Made by a program: the position numbers and the translations under genes
In this document: positions 30,000-64,000 of the stretch, in pieces
Layout of the letters: every line of letters starts with the position of its first letter
How positions within the stretch are numbered: the stretch's first letter is position 1
The notes under the pieces: generated by a model
Databases searched by the model: none
Told to the model about the DNA's origin: nothing
The model's input: only the letters and a program-made list of their open reading frames with translations
Source: Basidiobolus meristosporus CBS 931.73
Taxonomy: Eukaryota; Fungi; Basidiobolomycota
Assembly (NCBI GenBank): GCA_002104905.1
Contig: MCFE01000193.1
Coordinates: 72,595-136,594 of the forward strand
DNA: 64,000 bases
Reading direction: 5' to 3'

Positions 30000-31551
30000 A
30001 GAAATTTCGAATCACGCACTTGTGAAGCGACAATAAAGCACCCTCCTGAATAAAGTGGACTCTTTAAAATGACGCAGCGGTTGCATGCCGGACAATGGTC
30101 ACTTCTTTAACAGAGCGGAGGCATGTTTCGGCCAAACCATAGTCATGCTGCCATATAGTTTGTTGGATACTGACCATAGATCAGATTGCTGCTGCTATAG
30201 TACGCCCACTACGCAACTAGTTGTCAATATTTAGCAATTTGTTTAAAATAGCAAACCAATTCGGCATGTACACATCCAATAAAAAACGGATATTTTGGAT
30301 GGAATTTTTAGGGTGTGAATTGTCATCAGGGCTAGGGTTTAGGCGGGATTTTCTTGGTCATATCACTGTGACATTGCCTTACCAGGGATGATTTTTTTGG
30401 TGAGTGACAGTTACGGTGAAATCCAGGGAACCAATGCTATTGGCCACCTCCCTGTTGAAGAATTGTTAATCCTTCTGATTTAGGTTGGCGATCCCACTAA
30501 TTCACCCATCTATGCTTGGATATTAATGGTGCCAGGTTCGCGGATATTGACATAGGTATGCGCAATACTGGCAAATTCATCTAGAGTTTAAAGAGGGACT
30601 TTTACTACAAATATCCCTGGAGCAGTCTTAAAGGCCAGTAATGTAGATAATTTAATGGAAATCAGATCAATTAGCGGATTCCTTGACAATCTATTCCAAA
30701 AGCGGGCTCAACCAATCAACAAAAGTCCAGCACTCGATTTTGTACAAGGGTGGTCAAGACCCTACGCATAGAATCAACAACATTGTGGTGGATATTGGTT
30801 GCCATCAATCATGCAACTGGCTGGCCAATTGTACGAGCAGCAATGAATCCAGAGTACCAAGAGATACGGCAAAATCACTCTTATGGGGCATCAGAAATAA
30901 AGATGACATGCGTAAACGTACCGAACGAGAATTGGAGAAATTAAGACACCACCGCCAAGTAGCGGAAGAAGCTCAGAAGCAGGTAGCAATGAAAATGCAA
31001 CTACACTGAAACCAAGCAGTAAAAGAACGGAAGGATGAGCTGAAGAAAGGAGACCAGGCATGAATCCGGAATCAAGCGCGAATGAAATTTATGTCAGTTT
31101 GACTGGGTCCCTTCAAGATTACTCGAAAGATGCAGCTTGGAACATGTCAGCTAAAGGAACAGAATGGTCAAAATTTATAGGAATTATATCACGGCAATTG
31201 CCTTACAAAGGCATCATACGACATACCAAGCCGAAGAAGAGCGAATCCAGGAGAATCCTCAAACTTAAGAAGGGAAGAATGTCAAAGACAATACGAATCA
31301 AAGGCAACAAGTGAAATATGCACTGATTATATGAAGGCTGATCCGAAACAACACTATATAAGCATCTAGATAAGGGTCCAGTATTACACAGATATAACAC
31401 TACCACAGCTCTGGAGCAGAACAGAGTCGTATCACTTTAGTAAAATAAAGTGTGTCTATTAAACATGTCGAAATTATAAATGGACGCTGGAACATTCAAG
31501 ACAGGCTTCTTTTGGATACTTGATGGATCAGATTCCATAATTTTCCAGATT

Positions 31552-31623
31552 GGCTCAATGGTCTAGTAGTATGATTCCTCGTTCGGGTCGAGGAGGTCCC
31601 GGGTTCAATTCCCGGTTGAGCCC
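31552..31623 (+). tRNA. tRNA-Pro(CGG), intronless
   Basis: Acceptor GGCTCAA/TTGAGCC, anticodon stem CCTCG/CGAGG with loop TTCGGGT, T-arm CCGGG-TTCAATT-CCCGG, T4 terminator downstream. The D-loop reads AG at the usual GG. Confidence 0.9.
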
Positions 31624-55449: not shown

Positions 55450-56787
55450 ATGAGAGTCAAATCATCCCAAGTCTCAAGAAAGGATTTGCTTCTTGTAATC
55501 CCTGCTCTACTCCTCGCTGCTACTTCAGCAGCCGCAAAGTCTTTTCCGCTCAATGATGGAGTGAACCTTCGTGCCGGTCCAGGAACAAGCTATGCTGTGG
55601 TAGGATCCTTGAAAGCAGGAAATTACGTAGACATTGTATGTCAAGAGGCTGGTCAAGCTATTGGCGGATACAACATTTGGGACAAGCTCTCAGATGGTAA
55701 ATGGGTCTTCGATAAGTATGTCGAGACCGGAACCAAGCTTGTACCTGGAATCCCCAAATGTTCCCAGACTGGAGGAAATAGCGGCGAAAACATATTCCCC
55801 ATTAATGATAATGGTGTGAGAGTTCGCTCCGGCCCTGGTACTGGCTTTTCCCAAGTAGGAACCCTGAACAAAGGTGACCGCATAACCATCCAGTGTCAAG
55901 GTATCGGAGAGTCAGTAAACGGCTATAATGTCTGGGACAAGCTCGCCAACGGTAACTGGGTATTCGATAAATATGTGGAGACCGGAAGCAAGTTTGTATC
56001 AGGCATTCCAAAATGCGGCAATGGTAGTGGTAACGGCGACAATACCTTTCCTATCAATGATAATGGTGTGCGTGTCCGTTCAGGCCCTGGAACTAGCTAC
56101 TCCCAAGTAGGAACTCTTAACAAAGGAGATAAAGTGGCCATCCAGTGCCAAGGAACAGGTGAATCGGTGAACGGTTATAATATATGGGATAAGTTGACCA
56201 ACGGCAACTGGGTCTTCGATAAATATGTGGAAACTGGAGGCAAATATGTACCTGGAGTACCCAGGTGTGAAGGCGGGGACAGCGGAAACGGAGGAAACAC
56301 CAATAATGGTGGAAACGGTGGGTCCAATAATGGTCACATCAACCAAGCAGGATTGGATTTAGTGAAGAGCTTCGAAGGCTGGTTCCCCAATTTCTACATT
56401 GACCCTGTAGGCATCAAGACTGTAGGCTACGGGCATGCCTGCCACTCTGACCCTACTGGTTGTGCCAACATCCATCCTCCTCTCAGTGTTGCCCAAGGAG
56501 AAGATCTGCTTCGGAGAGACATGGCAGAGTTTGAGAAATGCGTTAGCGGTCAGATCTCAGTGCCCATCACCTCCAACCAATTCTCAGCGTTGGTGTCATT
56601 CTCCTTTAATGTGGGCTGTGGTGCTCTTCGTAATTCCGACATGCGCAAGTTCATTAACCAAGGGAACAACAAGTCAGCAGCGGCCGAATTTGGACTTTGG
56701 ATACATGGGGGAGGAAAGGTTCTTCCTGGATTAGTCCGTAGAAGAAAAGCTGAGCGCGATCTTTTCTGTTCTGGTATAATATGCTAA
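55450..56787 (+). CDS. Secreted lysozyme: three SH3b-like cell-wall-binding repeats plus a GH24 (phage-type) muramidase domain, intronless
   Basis: 3 repeats of V..R.GPGT....VG.L..G...WDKL..G.WVFDKYV. Catalytic E-x8-D-x5-T (FEGWFPNFYIDPVGIKTVGYGH), SFSFNVG, and C-terminal LPGLVRRRKAE. Confidence 0.92.
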   Translation: MRVKSSQVSRKDLLLVIPALLLAATSAAAKSFPLNDGVNLRAGPGTSYAVVGSLKAGNYVDIVCQEAGQAIGGYNIWDKLSDGKWVFDKYVETGTKLVPGIPKCSQTGGNSGENIFPINDNGVRVRSGPGTGFSQVGTLNKGDRITIQCQGIGESVNGYNVWDKLANGNWVFDKYVETGSKFVSGIPKCGNGSGNGDNTFPINDNGVRVRSGPGTSYSQVGTLNKGDKVAIQCQGTGESVNGYNIWDKLTNGNWVFDKYVETGGKYVPGVPRCEGGDSGNGGNTNNGGNGGSNNGHINQAGLDLVKSFEGWFPNFYIDPVGIKTVGYGHACHSDPTGCANIHPPLSVAQGEDLLRRDMAEFEKCVSGQISVPITSNQFSALVSFSFNVGCGALRNSDMRKFINQGNNKSAAAEFGLWIHGGGKVLPGLVRRRKAERDLFCSGIIC

Positions 56788-57083
56788 GGCTAATGGTCTG
56801 GATATTCGATTCGGTAGTCACATCTATTTTTCCCCAGCTATTTGAATTGCAACTTACCGGAATAAACTCTATCCATCATATTTGATCTGCCTGCAGCATG
56901 TGTGTTTTCCCATTAATTTCCTTGCTTGTTGAGAGTCAAGCCTGTATCAAAGAACTCATATTACTGATGGCTATTGACTTTACCCCTCAACTCAGATCAG
57001 TACTGGTGATCTGTACACCCGGTATTTCCACAGAGATTTAGGATCAGGGGGAGGGAAAGTTACCTGCATGGTGCCACCTTTAT

Positions 57084-58175
57084 TTAGGGGGCGACAGTCA
57101 CCAACAGGTGAAATCTTTATTTCAGTTGAAATAAAGAAGCCAGCACTACTGTTGTAGCTTTGATACAAGAGTGTGTAGCTGAGGGGAATTTGCAGGTAAG
57201 TTAATAAGAAGTGATGATAGCCCTTCAGTGCTCAAGACACTGTTCAGTGGGAAGGGGGGTAGCAAGAGAGGTAAGAATGACTTGTGAACAACATTAATGA
57301 GGGGAATGTGATAAGGATTGATATTCATCATAAAGGGAGTGTGCTGCTTCAGATATTGCTGCCAAAGGTCTGTCAAGTACTTCAGGTAGGCCAACTTGGG
57401 TTTTTATGACTGCAGAATATATTGAGCAAACTCCTTGACTTCAGGATCTCCAAGTATAGTTCTCCAGCAGGAGCCAGGTGTAGTGTGATGTGTTCTCTTC
57501 CAGGCCTTAATCAGTGGGTAGTTGCAGTGGTGAAGTCTGAGATATAATCTGGTTCTAAGCTAGAGAAGTCTGATCTTATATGGCATAAACCCAAAAGCAC
57601 CAAGAATAGCATGTCTGTAGGGGCATTCAGGCAAATTAGGTACCAAGGAGGTAATGCACCATACTGCAAACTTGTCAAGCTTAGTGCAGTCTCTAGAAGT
57701 AAGAGAGAAGTGGTAAGCCAAATTCCAGGACAGGGAAGACAAATTGCTTGAGTAGAAGCAGGCAGCTGGGAGCTGAAGTTGTAGGAGGAGTAACAGCCAG
57801 TAGCTTGTGGAGTGCCTGTCTTGCCAGGATAATTCTCTTCTTCAGGTGTGCTACAGAGTCTAGTCCAGTAGGAAGGAAAGGAAAGCCAAGATATGTAGCA
57901 GAAACCTGAGCAGGTAGAGTGGTGTTCTCCAAGTTGATGGGAGAGCCCAAAGGTACTGTCTTTGCAATGGAAAGCTGAAGATTATTCTTCTGCAGATACT
58001 GGTGGATGGTCTGGGAGTCTTGTTGCACATTGGAGGAGGATATTCTGATGTCATCAGCAAAGAGAGTAACCAGGCAGTCAGCTGAGAGTCTTGGGAAGTC
58101 AATCAGGAAGATGGCAAACAGTATAGGACCAAGCACAGAGCCTTGAACCACTCCATTAGGAACTGAGAACACAGC
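57084..58175 (-). mobile_element. Telomeric retro-unit U1: 5'-truncated, decayed LINE-type RT (family A)
   Basis: GVVQGSVLGP and FADD motifs. Frameshift near 57705 and nonsense near 57405. Shared 3' tail at 57084-57142. Confidence 0.9.
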
Positions 58176-59100
58176 TTAGGGGGGAGAGAAAGTCACCAAG
58201 GTAGGTGAAATCTTTATTTGATTGCAGACAAGTCCAACTACAAATAAAGAAGCCAGCTGGGAATAGAAGATTCCCAAAGTAAACACTAAATTGAATATGA
58301 ATAAATCTAAGTTAAAGCTAAGGCAGTATCCCAGAGTACACTGGAGTTCATGTTCATGGGGGAGTGAAGTAGATAAGCTTGAGATATATAATAATCTTTG
58401 AGGAAGTGGGTAACAGCAGGTGAAGGGGAGTTTTTGATAAGTGAAGTGAATCTTGAGAGCAGAGATTTCTCTAATGAGAAGGTCTTGTAAACTGGAGAAT
58501 CAGGAAACTCTTTAAAGGCATGGTCAGTAGGTTCCCAGTAAAACTGGTCAGAGACATTTTGAGAGAACTCTTTAGCAATACTTTTGTCAAGTACTACCTC
58601 CAAAGTGTGATTGTTGATAAATCTCATGTTAACAATCTTGGATAAATTGTAACCTTGTTGCTTGAGATACATCCTATGCTCAGATATAGGAATGAACTCC
58701 ACATTGGCAAAGTAGCAGACAGCCCAGTCAGTAGCAGGAGTCAAATCAGAAGTAGCAGGAAACTTTCTTTTAGTCTTGGGAGGAGCAGCAGGATGTCTTG
58801 AGGAAGCAGGAACAGGCTTTTTGACAGCTTCAGAGTAGGAAGAGTGAGCAGGAGCAGATGATTCTTGGGGAGTCTTGTTGACAGGAACAGCTGGCAGAGA
58901 GACAATAGATTCTTGAAGATCAGAGAAGGCAGAAAACAGCTTTTGAACTTGTTTCTTGAGTAAAGCATTTTCAGCTTCAACAAGTGCATGCCTTTCCTCA
59001 AGGAAGGAAATTTGAAGGGAATGGAGTGAAGGCATAAGAAATAAGAAGAAGAGGGTGAGATGGGGTGGGTGGGTGGGAAAATTAGCAGGGAGAAGAGAAG
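58176..59100 (-). mobile_element. Telomeric retro-unit U2: ORF1-only unit
   Basis: Has its own 3' tail motif at 58176-58256, a single ORF, and no RT sequence. Confidence 0.8.
58307..59035 (-). CDS. Putative LINE ORF1/Gag-like RNA-binding protein (242 aa)
   Basis: ATG at 59035 after a pyrimidine-rich leader. N-terminal coiled coil, P/S/A-rich linker (SYSEAVKK), then an alpha/beta segment (VCYF...L...GY....I....F.....LEV) that looks RRM-like. The ORF1 assignment is inferred. Confidence 0.65.
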   Translation of the reverse strand: MPSLHSLQISFLEERHALVEAENALLKKQVQKLFSAFSDLQESIVSLPAVPVNKTPQESSAPAHSSYSEAVKKPVPASSRHPAAPPKTKRKFPATSDLTPATDWAVCYFANVEFIPISEHRMYLKQQGYNLSKIVNMRFINNHTLEVVLDKSIAKEFSQNVSDQFYWEPTDHAFKEFPDSPVYKTFSLEKSLLSRFTSLIKNSPSPAVTHFLKDYYISQAYLLHSPMNMNSSVLWDTALALT

Positions 59101-60902
59101 GGGTTAGGGGGAGACAGTCACCAACAGGTGAAATCTTTATTTCAGTTGAAACAAAGAAGCCAGTGCTACTGTTGCAGCTTTGATACAAGAGTGTGTAGCT
59201 GAGGGGAATTTGTAGGTAAGTTAATAAGAAGTGATGATAGCTCTTCAGTGCTCAAGACACTGTTCAGTGGGAGGGGGGGTAGCAAGAGAGGTAAGAATGA
59301 CTTGTGAACAACATTAATGAGGGGAATGTGATAAGGATTGATATTCATCATAAATGGAGTGTGCTGCTGCAGATATTGCTGCCAAAGGTCTGTCAAGTAC
59401 TTCAGGTAGGCCAGCTTGGGTTTTTCTGACTGCAGAATAAAGTGAGCAAACTTCTTGACTTCAGGATCTCCAAGTATAGTTCTCCAGCAGGAGCCAGGTG
59501 TTGTGTGGTGTGTTCTCTTCCAGGCCTTAATCAGTGGGTTGTTGCAGTTGTGAAGTCTGAGGTATAATCTGGTTCTAAGGTAGAGAAGTCTGATCTTATA
59601 GGGCATAAACCCAAAAGCACCAAGAGTAGCATGTCTGTAGGGGCATTAAGGCAAATGAGGCACCAAGGAGGTAATGCACCAAACTGCAAACTTGTCAAGC
59701 TTAGTGCAGTCTCTAGAAGTAAGAGAGAGAAGTGGTAAGCCAAATTCCAGGACAGGGAAGACAAACTGCTTGAGTAGAAGGAGGCAGCTGGGAGCTGAAG
59801 TTGTAGGAGGAGTAACAGCCAACAGCTTGTGGAGTGCCTGTCTTGCAAGGATAATTCTCTTCTTCAGGTGTGCTCCAGAGTCTAGTCCAGTAGGAAGGAA
59901 AGGAAAGCCAAGATATGTAGCAGAAACCTGAGCAGGTAGAGTGGAGTTCTCCAAGTTGATGGGAGTGCCCAAAGGTACTGTCTTTGCAATGGAAAGCTGG
60001 AGATTATTCTTCTGCAGATACTGGTGGATGGTCTGGGAGTCTTGTTGCACATTAGAGGAGGATTTTCTGATGTCATCAGCAAAGAGAGTAACCAGGCAGT
60101 CAGCTGAGAGTCTTGGGAAGTCATTCAGGAAGATGGCAAACAGTATAGGACCAAGCACAGAGCCTTGAACCACTCCATTAGGAACTGAGAACACAGCTGA
60201 TTGCTCACTTGGGTGCAGAATTCTTGCTTGTGGATCCAGAAACAGAGACCTGACAAGGAGGGTGAGAGAGGTACTGGAGAAGCATTGCAACTTGGACCAA
60301 GGCAGATTTCTGTCAACTGAATCAAAGGCCTTAGTAATATCAAACAGAACAGAGGGATACTTGCACTGGAGAGAGTGATCTTGGCTAAGTATGACTGCAT
60401 ATTCCAAGGAGAGGCCAGGAACAAAGCCAAACTGTGGAGGATGAAACTTGAGGGAGTCAGAGTAGAGCTCCTGAGCAAGCAGAAGCTCAAACACCTTTCT
60501 GCAGGTGGGCAGCAGAGATATTGGTCTGTAGGAGCTAGGATCCAGGTGCTTTCCTTTACCCTTGTACAGTGGCAGAACATTTGCAAAGGACCATTTCTCA
60601 GGAGTAGAAAGCTGGGCTGAGCATTGCTGAAACAGTGGAAGCAGAAGTGCAGACATGGCCTTGGTACTAGTCTTCAGAAGCTCATAAGAGATTGTGTCCA
60701 CACCTGGAGCAGTAGAGTTGGGAAGCCTCTTGAGCACATTATGGATTCTCCTTTGATCAAGTGCAAGTGGGATGGGCAGAGTCTTGAAGTCAGGATGAAA
60801 GCCAGCAGTTGAGTACTGTTTTGTAGAGAAGAAGATGTTAGCCAGCTGTTCTGTTGAAGGTAACTTCCTGGAAGAGGGCCTCATTGCTCTGTAGAGTCTT
60901 GA
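59101..60902 (-). mobile_element. Telomeric retro-unit U3: 5'-truncated family-A RT with one nonsense codon
   Basis: Near-identical to U5. GAA to TAA at 59648-59646, with ORFs 59646-60902 and 59166-59606 in the same frame. Confidence 0.92.
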
Positions 60903-61426
60903 TAGGGGGAGGAAAGTCACCAAGTGGTGAAATCTTTATTTACTTATGACAAGTATCTAAAGAAGCCAAGTTAATCTGAAGTTATTCCTAGAAAGCTAGG
61001 TCTGAGAGATATCTTCCTGGTAAGCCAGGTCTGAGAGTTGAGAAGCCAAGTGGTACTATATTTCCTAGTTAGCTAGGTCTGAGAGTGGTTTCCTGGAAAG
61101 CCAGGCCTGAGAAGTGAGAATCTGAATATATCTGAGCTAAGTTATACTGGTTTGCGATAGCTGAATTGTGGCCGGAATGGCCAGTAGACTGGGGGAACTG
61201 AGATGTATTTCTGGGCGATCACTGGCGAAATTTACTAGGCAAATCTGGCCAATTAGCATTTCAAGGATTTCAGCCAATCAGAGCCTTTACTTTGCCCGAT
61301 GGTTGATCAAGCCATCTCCCAATGAGCACACATCAATTTATTAATCAAATTTTGCTGGATCCAGGATTTGAACCCACAACCATAAGTATGGAAGGGTTAG
61401 GGATAACCACAAGGCTAAGTGTTCTT
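60903..61426 (-). ncRNA. Telomeric retro-unit U4: non-coding, SINE-like (tRNA-type A/B boxes at the 5' end, LINE-type tail at the 3' end)
   Basis: A-box-like TAGCCTTGTGG (61417-61407) and B-box GGTTCAAATCC (61374-61364) at tRNA spacing. No T4 run on the sense strand. Shared tail at 60903-60968. Confidence 0.65.
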
Positions 61427-63397
61427 GGTTAGGGGGGGAGACAGTCACCAACAGGTGAAATCTTTATTTCAGTTGAAACAAAGAAGCCAGCGCTACTGTT
61501 GTAGCTTTGATACAAGAGTGTGTAGCTGAGGGGAATTAGTAGGTAAGTTAATAAGAAGTGATGATAGTTCTTCAGTGCTCAAGACACTGTTCAGTGGGAA
61601 GGGGGGTAGCAAGAGAGGTAAGAATGACTTGTGAACAACATTAATGAGGGGAATGTGATAAGGATTGATATTCATCATAAAGGGAGTGTGCTGCTGCAGA
61701 TATTGCTGCCAAAGGTCTGTCAAGTACTTCAGGTAGGCCAGCTTGGGTTTTTCTGACTGCAGAATAAATTCAGCAAACTTCTTGACTTCAGGATCTCCAA
61801 GTATGGTTCTCCAGCAGGAGCCAGGTGTTGTGTGGTGTGTTCTCTTCCAGGCCTTAATCAGTGGGTTGTTGCAGTTGTGAAGTCTGAGGTATAATCTGGT
61901 TCTAAGGTAGAGAAGTCTGATCTTATAGGGCATAAACCCAAAAGCACCAAGAATAGCATGTCTGTAGGGGCATTCAGGCAAATGAGGCACCAAGGAGGTA
62001 ATGCACCATACTGCAAACTTGTCAAGCTTAGTGCAGTCTCTAGAAGTAAAAGAGAGAAGTGGTAAGCCAAATTCCAGGACAGGGAAGACAAACTGCTTGA
62101 GTAGAAGGAGGCAGCTGGGAGCTGAAGCTGTAGGAGGAGTAACAGCCAGTAGCTTGTGGAGTGCCTGTCTTGCTAGGATAATTCTCTTCTTCAGGTGTGC
62201 TCCAGAGTCTAGTCCAGTAGGAAGGAAAGGAAAGCCAAGATATGTAGCAGAAACCTGCGCAGGTAGAGTGGAGTTCTCCAAGTTGATGGGAGTGCCCAAA
62301 GGTACTGTCTTCGCAATGAAAAGCTGGAGATTATTCTTCTGCAGATACTGGTGGATGGTCTGGGAGTCTTGTTGCACATTGGAGGAGGATATTCTGATGT
62401 CATCAGCAAAGATAGTAACCAGGCAGTCAGCTGAGAGTCTTGGGAAATCATTCAGGAAGATGGCAAACAGTATAGGACCAAGCACAGAGCCTTGAACCAC
62501 TCCATTAGGAACTGAGAACACTGGTGATTGCTCACTTGGGTGCAGAATTCTTGCTTGTGGATCCAGAAACAGAGACCTGACAAGGAGGGTGAGAGAGGTA
62601 CTGGAGAAGCATTGCAACTTGGACCAAAGCAGATTTCTGTCAACTGAATCAAAGGCCTTAGTAATATCAAACAGAACAGAGGGATACTTGCACTGGAGAG
62701 AGTGATCTTGGCTAAGTATGACTGCATATTCCAAGGAGAGGCCAGGAACAAAGCCAAACTGTGGAGGATGAAACTTGAGGGAGTCAGAGTAGAGCTCCTG
62801 AGCAAGCAGAAGCTCAAACACCTTTCTGCAGGTGGGCAGCAGAGATATTGGTCTGTAGGAGCTGGGATCCAGGTGCTTTCCTTTACCCTTGTACAGTGGC
62901 AGAACATTTGCAAAGGACCATTCCTCAGGAGTAGAAAGCTGGGCTGAGCATTGCTGAAACAGTGGAAGCAGAAGTGCAGACATGGCCTTGGTACTAGTCT
63001 TCAGAAGCTCATAGGAGATTGTGTCCACACCTGGAGCAGTAGAGTTGGGAAGCCTCTTGAGCACATTATGGATTCTCCCTTGATCAAGTGCAAGTGGGAT
63101 GGGCAGAGTCTTGAAGTCAGGATGAAAGCCAGGAGTTGAGTACTGCTTTGTAGAGAAGAAGATGTTAGCCAGCTGTTCTGTTGAAGGTAACTTCCTGGAA
63201 GAGGGCCTCATTGCCCTGTAGAGTCTTGATACTGTTCTTGTGATAGAGTTGGAAGATTGCAGAGGCAAAGATCTCATAATATGATCCCAGAGCTGAGTAT
63301 GCAGAGTGTGGTGAATTGCCTTGGAGTGGTGTATTGCTGTCAGGAGGAGTTTCTCTGTTTTTGGGTTAGGGAAACTCAGGTAGCTTTGTTGTAGGGC
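61427..63397 (-). mobile_element. Telomeric retro-unit U5: longest family-A RT copy
   Basis: 3' tail at 61427-61490 and an uninterrupted ORF. Distal end joined to (TTAGGG)2-3. Confidence 0.92.
61493..63277 (-). CDS. Non-LTR (LINE-type) reverse transcriptase, 594 aa from ATG, no endonuclease visible
   Basis: APGVDTI, W....V.P.YKGKG, YRPISLL, QFGF, FDITKAFDSV, GVVQGSVLGPILF, FADD, YLG. The frame stays open upstream to 63397. Confidence 0.93.
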   Translation of the reverse strand: MRSLPLQSSNSITRTVSRLYRAMRPSSRKLPSTEQLANIFFSTKQYSTPGFHPDFKTLPIPLALDQGRIHNVLKRLPNSTAPGVDTISYELLKTSTKAMSALLLPLFQQCSAQLSTPEEWSFANVLPLYKGKGKHLDPSSYRPISLLPTCRKVFELLLAQELYSDSLKFHPPQFGFVPGLSLEYAVILSQDHSLQCKYPSVLFDITKAFDSVDRNLLWSKLQCFSSTSLTLLVRSLFLDPQARILHPSEQSPVFSVPNGVVQGSVLGPILFAIFLNDFPRLSADCLVTIFADDIRISSSNVQQDSQTIHQYLQKNNLQLFIAKTVPLGTPINLENSTLPAQVSATYLGFPFLPTGLDSGAHLKKRIILARQALHKLLAVTPPTASAPSCLLLLKQFVFPVLEFGLPLLSFTSRDCTKLDKFAVWCITSLVPHLPECPYRHAILGAFGFMPYKIRLLYLRTRLYLRLHNCNNPLIKAWKRTHHTTPGSCWRTILGDPEVKKFAEFILQSEKPKLAYLKYLTDLWQQYLQQHTPFMMNINPYHIPLINVVHKSFLPLLLPPFPLNSVLSTEELSSLLINLPTNSPQLHTLVSKLQQ

Positions 63398-63880
63398 TTA
63401 GGGTTAGGGTTAGGGGAGGGAAAGTCACCAAGTTGGTGAAATCTTTATTTGAGTTAAGAACTAATCTAGGTACAAATAAAGAAGCCAATTAAGAGGTCTA
63501 GAACCTCTCTAATAAATAATCTAATTTATGTTTTGTTTCATCTCTAATGTTTGTTTCAATAAAGTAAAGCTCATCAGGGGTAAATATAAAATTCAGGGGT
63601 TTTGGGGGAAGTACAAATTGTAGATGTTTCTGATCAATATAATCCAAGACTGGAACCCAGCCTGGGATTAGGTATAGTAGGAAAGGTGTGTGGACTTGTA
63701 AGTAGCTCTGCCACATAGATCTTAGATGGTCCTGAGCCAGTAGTCTTGGTTTCTCAGCTTTTTGAAGTTTTGAAGCAAGCTCTGTTACTACAGCAGAGCC
63801 AACCAGGGTGTGCCAGCAAGAAGATTTCAGGGAGGAGTTAGATTGAAGCCATTGTTTGATGGAGGGGTTATGTGATTTCT
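63398..63880 (-). mobile_element. Telomeric retro-unit U6: 3' fragment of a second, diverged RT family (B)
   Basis: The open frame 63881-63498 reads NPSIKQW..SSCWHTLVG..EKPRL..WQSYLQVHTPF..LPPKPLN, which aligns with family A NPLIKAW..GSCWRTILG..EKPKL..WQQYLQQHTPF..LPPFPLN. Tail motif at 63410-63487. Confidence 0.85.
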
Positions 63881-64000
63881 GGGTTAGGGTAGGGTTAGGG
63901 TTAGGGTTAGGGTTAGGTTAGGGTTAGGGTTAGGGTTAGGGTTAGGGTTAGGGTTAGGGTTAGGGTTAGGGTTAGGGTTAGGGTTAGGGTTAGTTAGTTA
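63881..64000 (+). repeat. Telomeric (TTAGGG)n tract, about 18 units
   Basis: Perfect hexamers with one TAGGG and one TTAGG variant. The last 11 nt are degenerate. Confidence 0.97.

Follow-up and report, generated by a model that had tools for sequence, protein, structure and literature searches.

We analyzed a 64-kb window of the Basidiobolus meristosporus CBS 931.73 genome (assembly GCA_002104905.1, contig MCFE01000193.1, positions 72,595 to 136,594 of the forward strand; coordinates below are those of the window unless another sequence is named) whose right edge coincides with the end of the contig. Direct reading of positions 56500-64000 revealed six retroelement units stacked head-to-tail between the last gene and a terminal (TTAGGG)n tract, as a model working from the letters alone (hereafter the original prediction) had proposed. 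Every unit has its sense orientation on the C-rich strand, all homology-bearing open reading frames (ORFs) of the array lie on the - strand, and the stretch is G-rich, with a GC skew of 0.23-0.31. About 250 nt of unique DNA separates the array from the last gene, which ends at 56787. These units belong to a telomere-specific long interspersed element (LINE) system with non-autonomous partners, and its set of partners, together with a structured tail complementary to the telomere, is what makes it unusual.

The innermost unit, U1 (57084-58175, tail 57084-57141), consists of the 3'-terminal 1092 nt of a LINE that we call RT-A, 5'-truncated and with a broken frame. It is followed by U2 (58176-59103, tail 58176-58254), an ORF1-only non-autonomous element that is truncated within its first 5' monomer and holds an open frame of 242 aa (58307-59035) with homology to the RT-A ORF1. 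U3 (59104-60902, tail 59104-59161) is again RT-A, represented by its 3'-terminal 1799 nt, 5'-truncated and with one frame break, and U4 (60903-61428, tail 60903-60967) is a full-length short interspersed element (SINE) of 526 nt. U5 (61429-63397, tail 61429-61488) comprises the 3'-terminal 1969 nt of RT-A, also 5'-truncated, with an open ORF2 frame, while only the 3'-terminal 483 nt of a second LINE, RT-B, make up U6 (63398-63880, tail 63410-63486), in which three TTAGGG units precede the tail. All six lie on the - strand. The terminal telomere tract occupies 63881-64000 on the + strand and runs to the contig end (Tandem Repeats Finder: period 6, 19.2 copies). The units thus start, on the + strand, at 57084, 58176, 59104, 60903, 61429 and 63398; four of these sites had been predicted exactly and two, predicted at 59101 and 61427, moved by no more than 3 nt. 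The predicted number of six units also stands, but a further decayed tail had been missed. This relic (unit 0, 57031-57083, - strand), found by blastn and sequence reading, is of the RT-B/ORF1-only type with a decayed stem (GTTACC...GGTGCC), and it aligns with the RT-B tail at 76% over 55 nt (E 2e-4) and with the U2 tail at 86% over 35 nt. Because of this seventh tail, the array begins slightly further inward than U1.

On the + strand each unit start has the layout (T)TAGGG, then G1-4, a spacer of 5-7 nt and GTCACC-loop-GGTGAAATCTTTATTT ... AAAGAAGCC. The GGTGAAATC core is present on that strand in 6/6 array copies, so that one conserved tail fused to (T)TAGGG-G1-4 does head all six units, as predicted. 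The expected lack of poly(A) between units was likewise seen: neither poly(A) nor any other A/T run occurred at the six window junctions or at ~90 junctions sampled from other contigs. No tail was found in the window outside its last 7 kb, the sole extra core match being a bare 9-mer at 30415.

Pattern counts on the whole 89.5-Mb assembly placed these observations in a genomic context. The RGTCACC-N4-6-type tail pattern gave 1424 forward and 121 reverse matches and its reversed control gave 0, while a slightly looser core gave 1566 forward and 144 reverse matches (controls 0). TAGGG stood within 13 nt upstream of this looser core in 1471 forward and 121 reverse cases, or ~93% of copies (controls 0), and both the sharing of the tail and its association with the telomere are therefore far beyond chance. 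Terminal position was checked on the 29 contigs that carry the first 100 listed tail matches. Among them, forward tails in contigs of 170-345 kb were all confined to the last 7-22 kb, for example at 253,746-261,260 in C2 (264,164 nt), 162,379 in C58 (170,903 nt) and 322,937-344,689 in C1 (345,098 nt); reverse tails (C27 and C80) all lay in the first 18.3 kb; and in contigs of ~20 kb the array makes up most of the sequence. Every tail in the checked contigs was at most 22 kb from a contig end and had the expected polarity. A search of the assembly for the tail had been suggested as a check on the original prediction, and it returned what was anticipated, namely terminal matches of one polarity. 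Since the tails were all terminal and uniformly pointed, dispersed and randomly oriented copies were not met in this sample.

There is good support for regarding the array as a genuine chromosome end, from a Basidiobolus-type fungus, and for the reality of the retroelement consortium that it carries. An assembly artefact was considered and rejected, as hundreds of contigs show this architecture and so do contigs assembled from short reads of other samples. At their left ends, 20 sampled contigs had no telomere repeats; 19 began with unique sequence and one (C80) inside an RT-A copy. Given these non-telomeric left ends and the bias of 1566 over 144 tails, most telomeric contigs carry their telomere on the right, and the forward/reverse bias is probably a convention of the assembly. 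In addition to the four families of the window, at least two further tail-bearing families were noticed, with spacers ATGATC/ATGATA and stems ATCACC-AAAG/ACAG-GGTGA (L024 ~1531-1591; L081 100-163; G000 contigs C25 at 161831, C27 at 5725 and C45 at 4399 and 17833).

U1, U3 and U5 are 5'-truncated copies of the same LINE. The U5 frame (594 aa, 61493-63277) encodes a reverse transcriptase (RT) domain (RVT_1, E 2.7e-24). Thirty other RT-A copies are 99% identical to the 5' part of U5 and most of them extend past its break; beyond 63397, other RT-A copies continue into a putative endonuclease (EN) domain, ORF1 and a 5' untranslated region (UTR). Read in sense, the full-length copy L062 begins with a 5' UTR of ~190 nt; ORF1 (511 aa) and ORF2 (917 aa) follow, separated by 15 nt, and the tail comes last. 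In its ORF1 product, a CPNC...CKC motif resembling a zinc ribbon occurs together with a coiled coil and a C-terminal domain, and its ORF2 product matches RVT_1 (E 2e-22) and, weakly, Exo_endo_phos_2 at residues 83-197 (E 2e-4, under the curated cut-off). Human L1 ORF2p is the closest solved structure to the RT-A ORF2 (E 2.6e-11). U6 retrieved 732 first-look candidates at 98-100% identity, and other copies of RT-B extend further than the one in the window. In a longer copy (L083), the ORF2 of 921 aa is 46% identical to that of RT-A over 909 aa, and the ORF1 has a C-terminal domain clearly related to that of RT-A. Judged from these alignments, RT-A and RT-B are sister LINE lineages, each with an ORF1 and an ORF2 predicted to combine endonuclease and RT. 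Both display LINE hallmarks: variable 5' truncation, an ORF1 upstream of ORF2 and no long terminal repeats. Copies of RT-A, RT-B and the ORF1-only element are 96-99% identical with open ORFs, and the nearest RT relatives outside this group of elements are 28-35% identical. Compared with a panel of 29 RT-A copies, U1 had the lowest median identity (96.8%), followed by U3 (98.25%), with U3 and U5 in the range of 98.1-98.3%. U1 being both the most diverged and the most decayed, this fits an order in which older units are innermost, for the three units that could be compared.

The putative endonuclease lies in the N-terminal part of ORF2. Six aligned lineages, 36-54% identical to each other, all have its motifs GDxNxPHPEN, RCVDW and SDH unchanged. 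We take a conserved LIDV, placed by eye against the L1 EN, to mark the catalytic Glu site, where the residue is Asp. A PDB sequence search with the EN region alone gave no match, and the structure model was poor, with a predicted local distance difference test (pLDDT) score of 57.6 and less than 50 for the N-terminal 79 residues. With this low-confidence model, the top Foldseek matches were L1 EN, APE1, ExoIII, TRAS1 EN and R1 EN (E 3e-3 to 2e-2). We read this region as a predicted N-terminal APE-like endonuclease that is apparently retained under selection.

The family of U2 comprises 494 first-look candidates, and its scored copies span positions 6-925 of the 925-nt query at 95-98% identity. 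The 242-aa frame is open in 12/12 distinct copies. Past the break of the window copy, other copies go on into tandem monomers of 101 nt (12.9 copies in L068). In our own reading, each monomer contains a TATAAAT, ~35 nt ahead of the 5' end that the copies prefer (...CCTTCTCTTCTCCC in sense). By analogy with the monomers of mouse L1, such an arrangement would leave a terminal copy with a promoter. The element has its own 3' UTR, leader and monomers, none of which occurs in RT-A or in the longer RT-B copy. Only the C-terminal domain of its protein matches the RT-A ORF1 (35% over 162 aa, E 6e-21), and the alignment marks the protein as a probable diverged and distant homologue of ORF1. No Pfam match was obtained for the U2 protein or ORF1, and by language-model features the nearest relatives of the ORF1 C-terminal domain are unnamed Mucoromycota protein clusters. 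An AlphaFold model that drew on six aligned sequences folds the U2 protein into a long helix at the N terminus (residues 6-47), a beta-alpha-beta-beta-alpha-beta domain (106-172, pLDDT ~90) joined to it by a disordered linker, and further helices at the C terminus. Structure searches with this model retrieved domains of the RNA-recognition-motif (RRM) type (Z 6-7, Foldseek E 0.02 or weaker), and L1 ORF1p was not among the matches; for the U2-protein and EN models, Foldseek gave no match at E 0.001 or better. The modeled resemblance to the RRM fold is suggestive and remains below the level that would prove kinship. A (GGAT)n/CCATCCATC motif near the 5' end is common to the RT-A 5' UTR (L062 4700-4745, + strand) and the L068 monomers, and may represent a common promoter or factor-binding element.

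U4 is non-coding. At least 12 junction contexts contain the same 5' end of this element (...GTGTTCTTGG on the + strand). Its body has no match outside the tail to any LINE described here. By eye, a B box (GGTTCAAATCC, 61364-61374 in + strand coordinates) and an A-box-like motif (TTAGCCTTGTGG, 61407-61418) were recognized ~30 nt apart, each agreeing at 10/11 positions with the RNA polymerase III (Pol III) box consensus, and a telomere-like CCCTAACCC (61394-61402) is also present. The original prediction had called this RNA tRNA-headed. The claim could not be confirmed beyond the two box-like motifs, given that ARAGORN found no tRNA in the array, Rfam returned nothing over 56800-64000 at E up to 1 (thus no ribozyme or tRNA model match) and folding of the U4 head gave no cloverleaf. 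The only tRNA that ARAGORN reported in the window, a tRNA-Pro(CGG) at 31552-31623 (+ strand), is unrelated to the SINE head. In the SINE tail no run of at least four T's was seen, and Pol III would therefore be expected to read through it.

The original prediction had described the cargoes behind the common tail as four unrelated ones. They are indeed separate elements, but not all of them are unrelated, since RT-A and RT-B have ORF2 products that are 46% identical and the U2 protein matches the RT-A ORF1.

What these families have in common was examined in an alignment of 12 sense-RNA tails from at least six families (RT-A, SINE, ORF1-only with three loop variants, RT-B, two further ones of this genome and three tails from other samples). 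The module opens with an AU-rich hairpin, which includes AAUAAA; next come a second hairpin of 5 bp (UCACC-loop-GGUGA) and a C-rich spacer, and CCCUAA closes it. Its two helices are 96.7% paired, whereas shifted partner columns give 38-57%, and at the pair that closes the long AU-rich helix GC, AU, CG and UG are all seen. Folding favors the sense strand, with z scores of -3.5, -2.3, -1.8 and -3.6 versus -0.9, -1.2, -0.2 and -1.8 for the antisense, and in the RT-A tail a G-U pair of the sense strand corresponds to an A-C mismatch in the antisense. AAUAAA is placed within the long helix, ~33 nt ahead of CCCUAA. Both the alignment and the pair counts show that the SINE shares its 3' tail with its partner LINEs.

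Relatives of the system also occur elsewhere. Among the close matches of the RT, the named ones are all proteins of B. meristosporus CBS 931.73. RT-like proteins that are 52-83% identical are present in metagenomes or other assemblies, and contigs from five other public runs hold an element with an RT 66% identical to that of RT-A, an ORF1 of its own and a tail ending in ...AAATAAAGATTTCACCTGTTGGTGATTGTCACCCCCTAACCCTAA. In these other-sample relatives the tail is followed by CCCTAACCCTAA and the next unit, and in L086 it leads into the 3' end of another tail-bearing unit. Their tail variant (spacer TGACA with ATCACC) is absent from the first 100 tails listed for this genome, for which reason the element probably derives from a different Basidiobolus-like genome.

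The junctions between units carry the evidence on how such arrays are built. Among ~90 junctions we mapped 52 distinct break points onto reference copies. At 33 of the 52, the parent sequence passes straight into in-phase telomere letters and then into the tail. In 29 of these clean junctions, 1-4 nt (mean 1.64) are common to the parent and the telomere repeat in phase, where chance would account for about a quarter of them (binomial p 5e-14). This microhomology supports pairing between a C-rich RNA 3' end and a G-rich DNA 3' end. In-phase telomeric letters ahead of the G-run of the tail numbered at most 9 at 43/52 break points and 12-32 at the other nine. Very short units were found as well, including three tandem RT-A units of 120 nt with differing junctions, all of them broken at the GTAGGTAAG(TTA) truncation hot spot. 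Tail stubs of 11 nt, 20 nt and about 5 nt occur as well and suggest abortive copying followed by re-priming. One such region, at 178-230 of L062, contains a 20-nt stub of the SINE type (GGAGGAAAGTCACCAAGTGGTG) between two units. Intact SINE 5' ends directly adjoin the following tail. Together, the micro-units, the microhomology and the intact SINE 5' ends suggest that the CCCUAA/C-run of an incoming RNA paired with an existing 3' end.

The best explanation for these data, to which we assign a probability of about 0.72, is that cDNA copies were added again and again to the chromosome end, and that they came from a consortium of non-LTR (long terminal repeat) retrotransposons specific to telomeres. 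In this model the two autonomous lineages, RT-A and RT-B, would supply the ORF1 protein and ORF2, and the Gag-only element and the SINE would be their dependants, mobilized in trans. The ORF2 protein would recognize the two-hairpin tail module, as the RTs of so-called stringent LINEs do, and the terminal CCCUAA and C-run would then pair with a DNA 3' end carrying a few telomere-like letters. Such a 3' end might be provided by the chromosome itself, when short or eroded, or by cDNA still being made on a previous template. From there the RT would copy the RNA outward, with frequent abortion leading to 5' truncation and sometimes a restart on another RNA, after which telomerase would cap the new end with TTAGGG. 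For telomere-primed copying, which the original prediction had also favored, the terminal location, the polarity, the discrete units and the microhomology all speak. That prediction had overlooked the conserved endonuclease, and in view of this APE-like domain of the autonomous elements, priming may not be purely on the chromosome end.

Several points weigh against this explanation. A conserved endonuclease is unexpected if priming needs just a free end. The identification of this domain has its own weaknesses: its model reaches a pLDDT of only 57.6, neither Pfam EN match attains the curated cut-off, Foldseek never reaches E 0.001, and the position that we presume to hold the catalytic Glu of other APE enzymes (placed by eye) is Asp in these elements. 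Irregular repeats or filler occur at 19/52 break points. One identical junction context was seen in two loci, from which it follows that duplication between ends also spreads arrays. Covariation in the tail is limited to one pair and most pairs are invariant; since these never vary, conservation of the tail extends to its sequence and not just its shape. Separate RNAs with the expected 3' ends, and their mobilization in trans, are postulated, and the priming mechanism draws its support from the anatomy of the junctions. The short telomere tracts between units and the recurrent micro-units would also fit template switching by the RT or the healing of eroded ends.

A first alternative is that multi-unit stacks are mainly single events, in which the RT, often before it has copied an RNA to its 5' end, moves on to a second RNA with the tail, at the 3' end that is complementary to the telomere, and so strings several units together on one primer. 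Non-LTR RTs are known for such template jumping. The microhomology in 29/33 clean junctions would be expected from it, as would the micro-units of 11-120 nt, among them the three tandem RT-A units that end at the same site with differing junctions, and the SINE 5' ends that remain intact beside the next tail argue against erosion between additions. On the other hand, the greater divergence and decay of U1 (96.8% versus 98.1-98.3%) suggest that additions took place over time, although this comparison concerns three units only. We regard a mainly single-event origin of the stacks as plausible but as less than an even bet.

A second alternative is endonuclease-dependent, site-specific insertion of the kind known from TRAS and SART, in which the EN would nick the G strand inside TTAGGG and prime reverse transcription on the target, the distal repeats being lost or re-made afterwards. 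The conservation of the EN motifs across lineages that are only 36-54% identical suggests purifying selection, the L1 and TRAS1 endonucleases are among the top fold matches, TAGGG lies ahead of 93% of tails, and some junctions hold 2-5 in-phase repeats. Insertion into telomere tracts should leave repeats on both sides of a unit, yet most units are not bounded by repeat tracts on either side in this way, with at most 9 in-phase letters ahead of the G-run of the tail at 43/52 break points. Truncated elements are often fused directly to the TTAGGG of the tail via 1-4 nt of microhomology although the terminal tract has ~19 units, and the innermost units sit on non-telomeric DNA. We consider nick-dependent priming less likely than not.

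A further feature may bear on the division of labor with telomerase. Each family has a telomere-like seed toward its 5' (distal) side: TTAGGGTTAGGG in the RT-A 5' UTR, GGGTTAGGG in the SINE head and GGGTTAGG in each 101-nt monomer of the ORF1-only family (window 61394-61402 and 63363-63371; L062 4625-4640, + strand; L068 2396-3687). The codons for F-P-N-P in ORF2 are TTC CCT AAC CCA in RT-A, RT-B and at least two other-sample relatives, while neighboring synonymous sites vary, and a third other-sample relative has the same CCCTAACCC at this site. Such seeds could recruit telomerase or cap proteins to new ends. We tentatively suggest, as an idea with the odds against it, that two systems cooperate, in which telomerase caps the ends and the consortium rebuilds those that have lost their cap, priming on whatever 3' end offers 1-4 telomere-like letters, and in which the seeds have evolved to make the new ends substrates for telomerase or cap proteins. 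If true, this would be a stable intermediate between telomeres maintained by telomerase only and those of the Drosophila type, and would include the first telomere-specific SINE.

That ongoing retrotransposition has given way to exchange between ends, with old arrays now propagated mostly by recombination, break-induced replication or unequal crossing-over, is improbable. The junction context found at two loci would agree with this, and Cryptococcus Cnl1 arrays expand and contract, possibly by recombination (10.1101/2021.08.11.455996). Yet as many as 52 distinct break points were counted among ~90 junctions, ORFs are open in RT-A, in RT-B and in 12/12 ORF1-only copies, identity between copies is 96-99%, and the spectrum of truncations is typical of LINEs. 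Finally, the common tail and the homology of the U2 protein to the C-terminal domain of the LINE ORF1 might suggest that U2, U4 and U6 all arose by internal deletion from one ORF1-EN-RT element. This is highly improbable because, in line with the original prediction, U2 and the SINE are discrete elements with their own reproducible 5' ends, the U2 protein is just 35% identical to the RT-A ORF1, U2 has its own 3' UTR, leader and monomers, the SINE body lacks any LINE match outside the tail, and U6 is simply a 5'-truncated RT-B.

The system shares traits with several known telomeric retroelements and differs from each. Like HeT-A, TART and TAHRE of Drosophila, it forms one-way head-to-tail arrays with 3' ends toward the centromere and variable 5' truncation, it has a Gag-only partner (U2) beside RT-encoding elements, as HeT-A is, and its promoter arrangement, as far as it can be read from the sequence, would let 5'-terminal copies be transcribed. 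The Drosophila elements, however, end in oligo(A) and have fully replaced telomerase repeats, whereas the elements described here end in the complement of the telomere, keep a TTAGGG cap and include a SINE. TRAS and SART of Bombyx are similar in being two-ORF LINEs of the APE type, to which our elements are predicted to belong, beside canonical telomere repeats, and their 3' UTR is required for retrotransposition (PMC4700185, PMC7265360). They insert at a fixed site inside TTAGG tracts, have poly(A) and are reported to be mostly full-length (PMC4700185), and SART1 requires its poly(A) (PMC7265360). In Basidiobolus, by contrast, truncation is heavy, and we encountered neither the 3' poly(A), at the six window and ~90 other junctions, nor fixed-site insertion within tracts, most junctions being devoid of flanking tracts (at most 9 in-phase telomeric letters at 43/52 break points).

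The fungal elements MoTeR, FoTeR and Cnl1 belong to the CRE/SLACS group, which has one large ORF and a C-terminal restriction-enzyme-like (REL, PD-(D/E)XK) endonuclease (PMC12857005), and subtelomeric arrays of Cnl1 reach 5-80 kb (10.1101/2021.08.11.455996). They resemble our elements in forming telomere-associated arrays in fungi, but the latter have a predicted N-terminal APE-like endonuclease and a separate ORF1. MoTeR, too, has a non-autonomous partner. Membership in the CRE clade was rejected on account of the two ORFs, with no Pfam match C-terminal of the RT and no REL domain detected. For Athena and Coprina, which are endonuclease-deficient Penelope-like elements, Gladyshev and Arkhipova in 2007 reportedly put forward the idea that a retroelement RNA with a telomere-complementary end anneals to the G-rich overhang. 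These elements have another class of RT, whereas a LINE-type RT with a predicted endonuclease domain is found here, and assignment to the Penelope-like elements was rejected in view of the lack of an Rfam hammerhead at E up to 1 and the best alignment of the RT with L1 ORF2p. A tail hairpin common to a LINE-SINE pair has a precedent in UnaL2 and UnaSINE1 of the eel (PMC1636434). Stringent pairs of this kind are dispersed over the genome, while in Basidiobolus all partners stay at the chromosome ends and carry the telomere complement as their terminal repeat. A literature search on Basidiobolus telomeres or retrotransposons and on telomere-specific SINEs yielded no paper that describes the system.

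Among natural models for the building of chromosome ends by RTs other than telomerase, telomere-specific retrotransposons come first. The APE-type ones known so far are from insects, and those of fungi have another kind of endonuclease. Two LINE lineages of predicted APE type with a Gag-only element and a SINE, confined to chromosome ends beneath a TTAGGG cap and united by one structured tail, form a combination that has not been seen together before. As the fungus is culturable, template choice by stringent LINE RTs, end priming free of cutting and the recruitment of dependants become testable. The many telomeric contigs also bear on the unusual karyotype of Basidiobolus and the problems of assembling its genome.

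The last gene before the array is an intronless ORF of 445 aa (55450-56787, + strand) whose product combines three bacterial SH3_3 domains with a Phage_lysozyme domain (E 2e-38), and from this domain content it looks like an acquisition from bacteria or phage.

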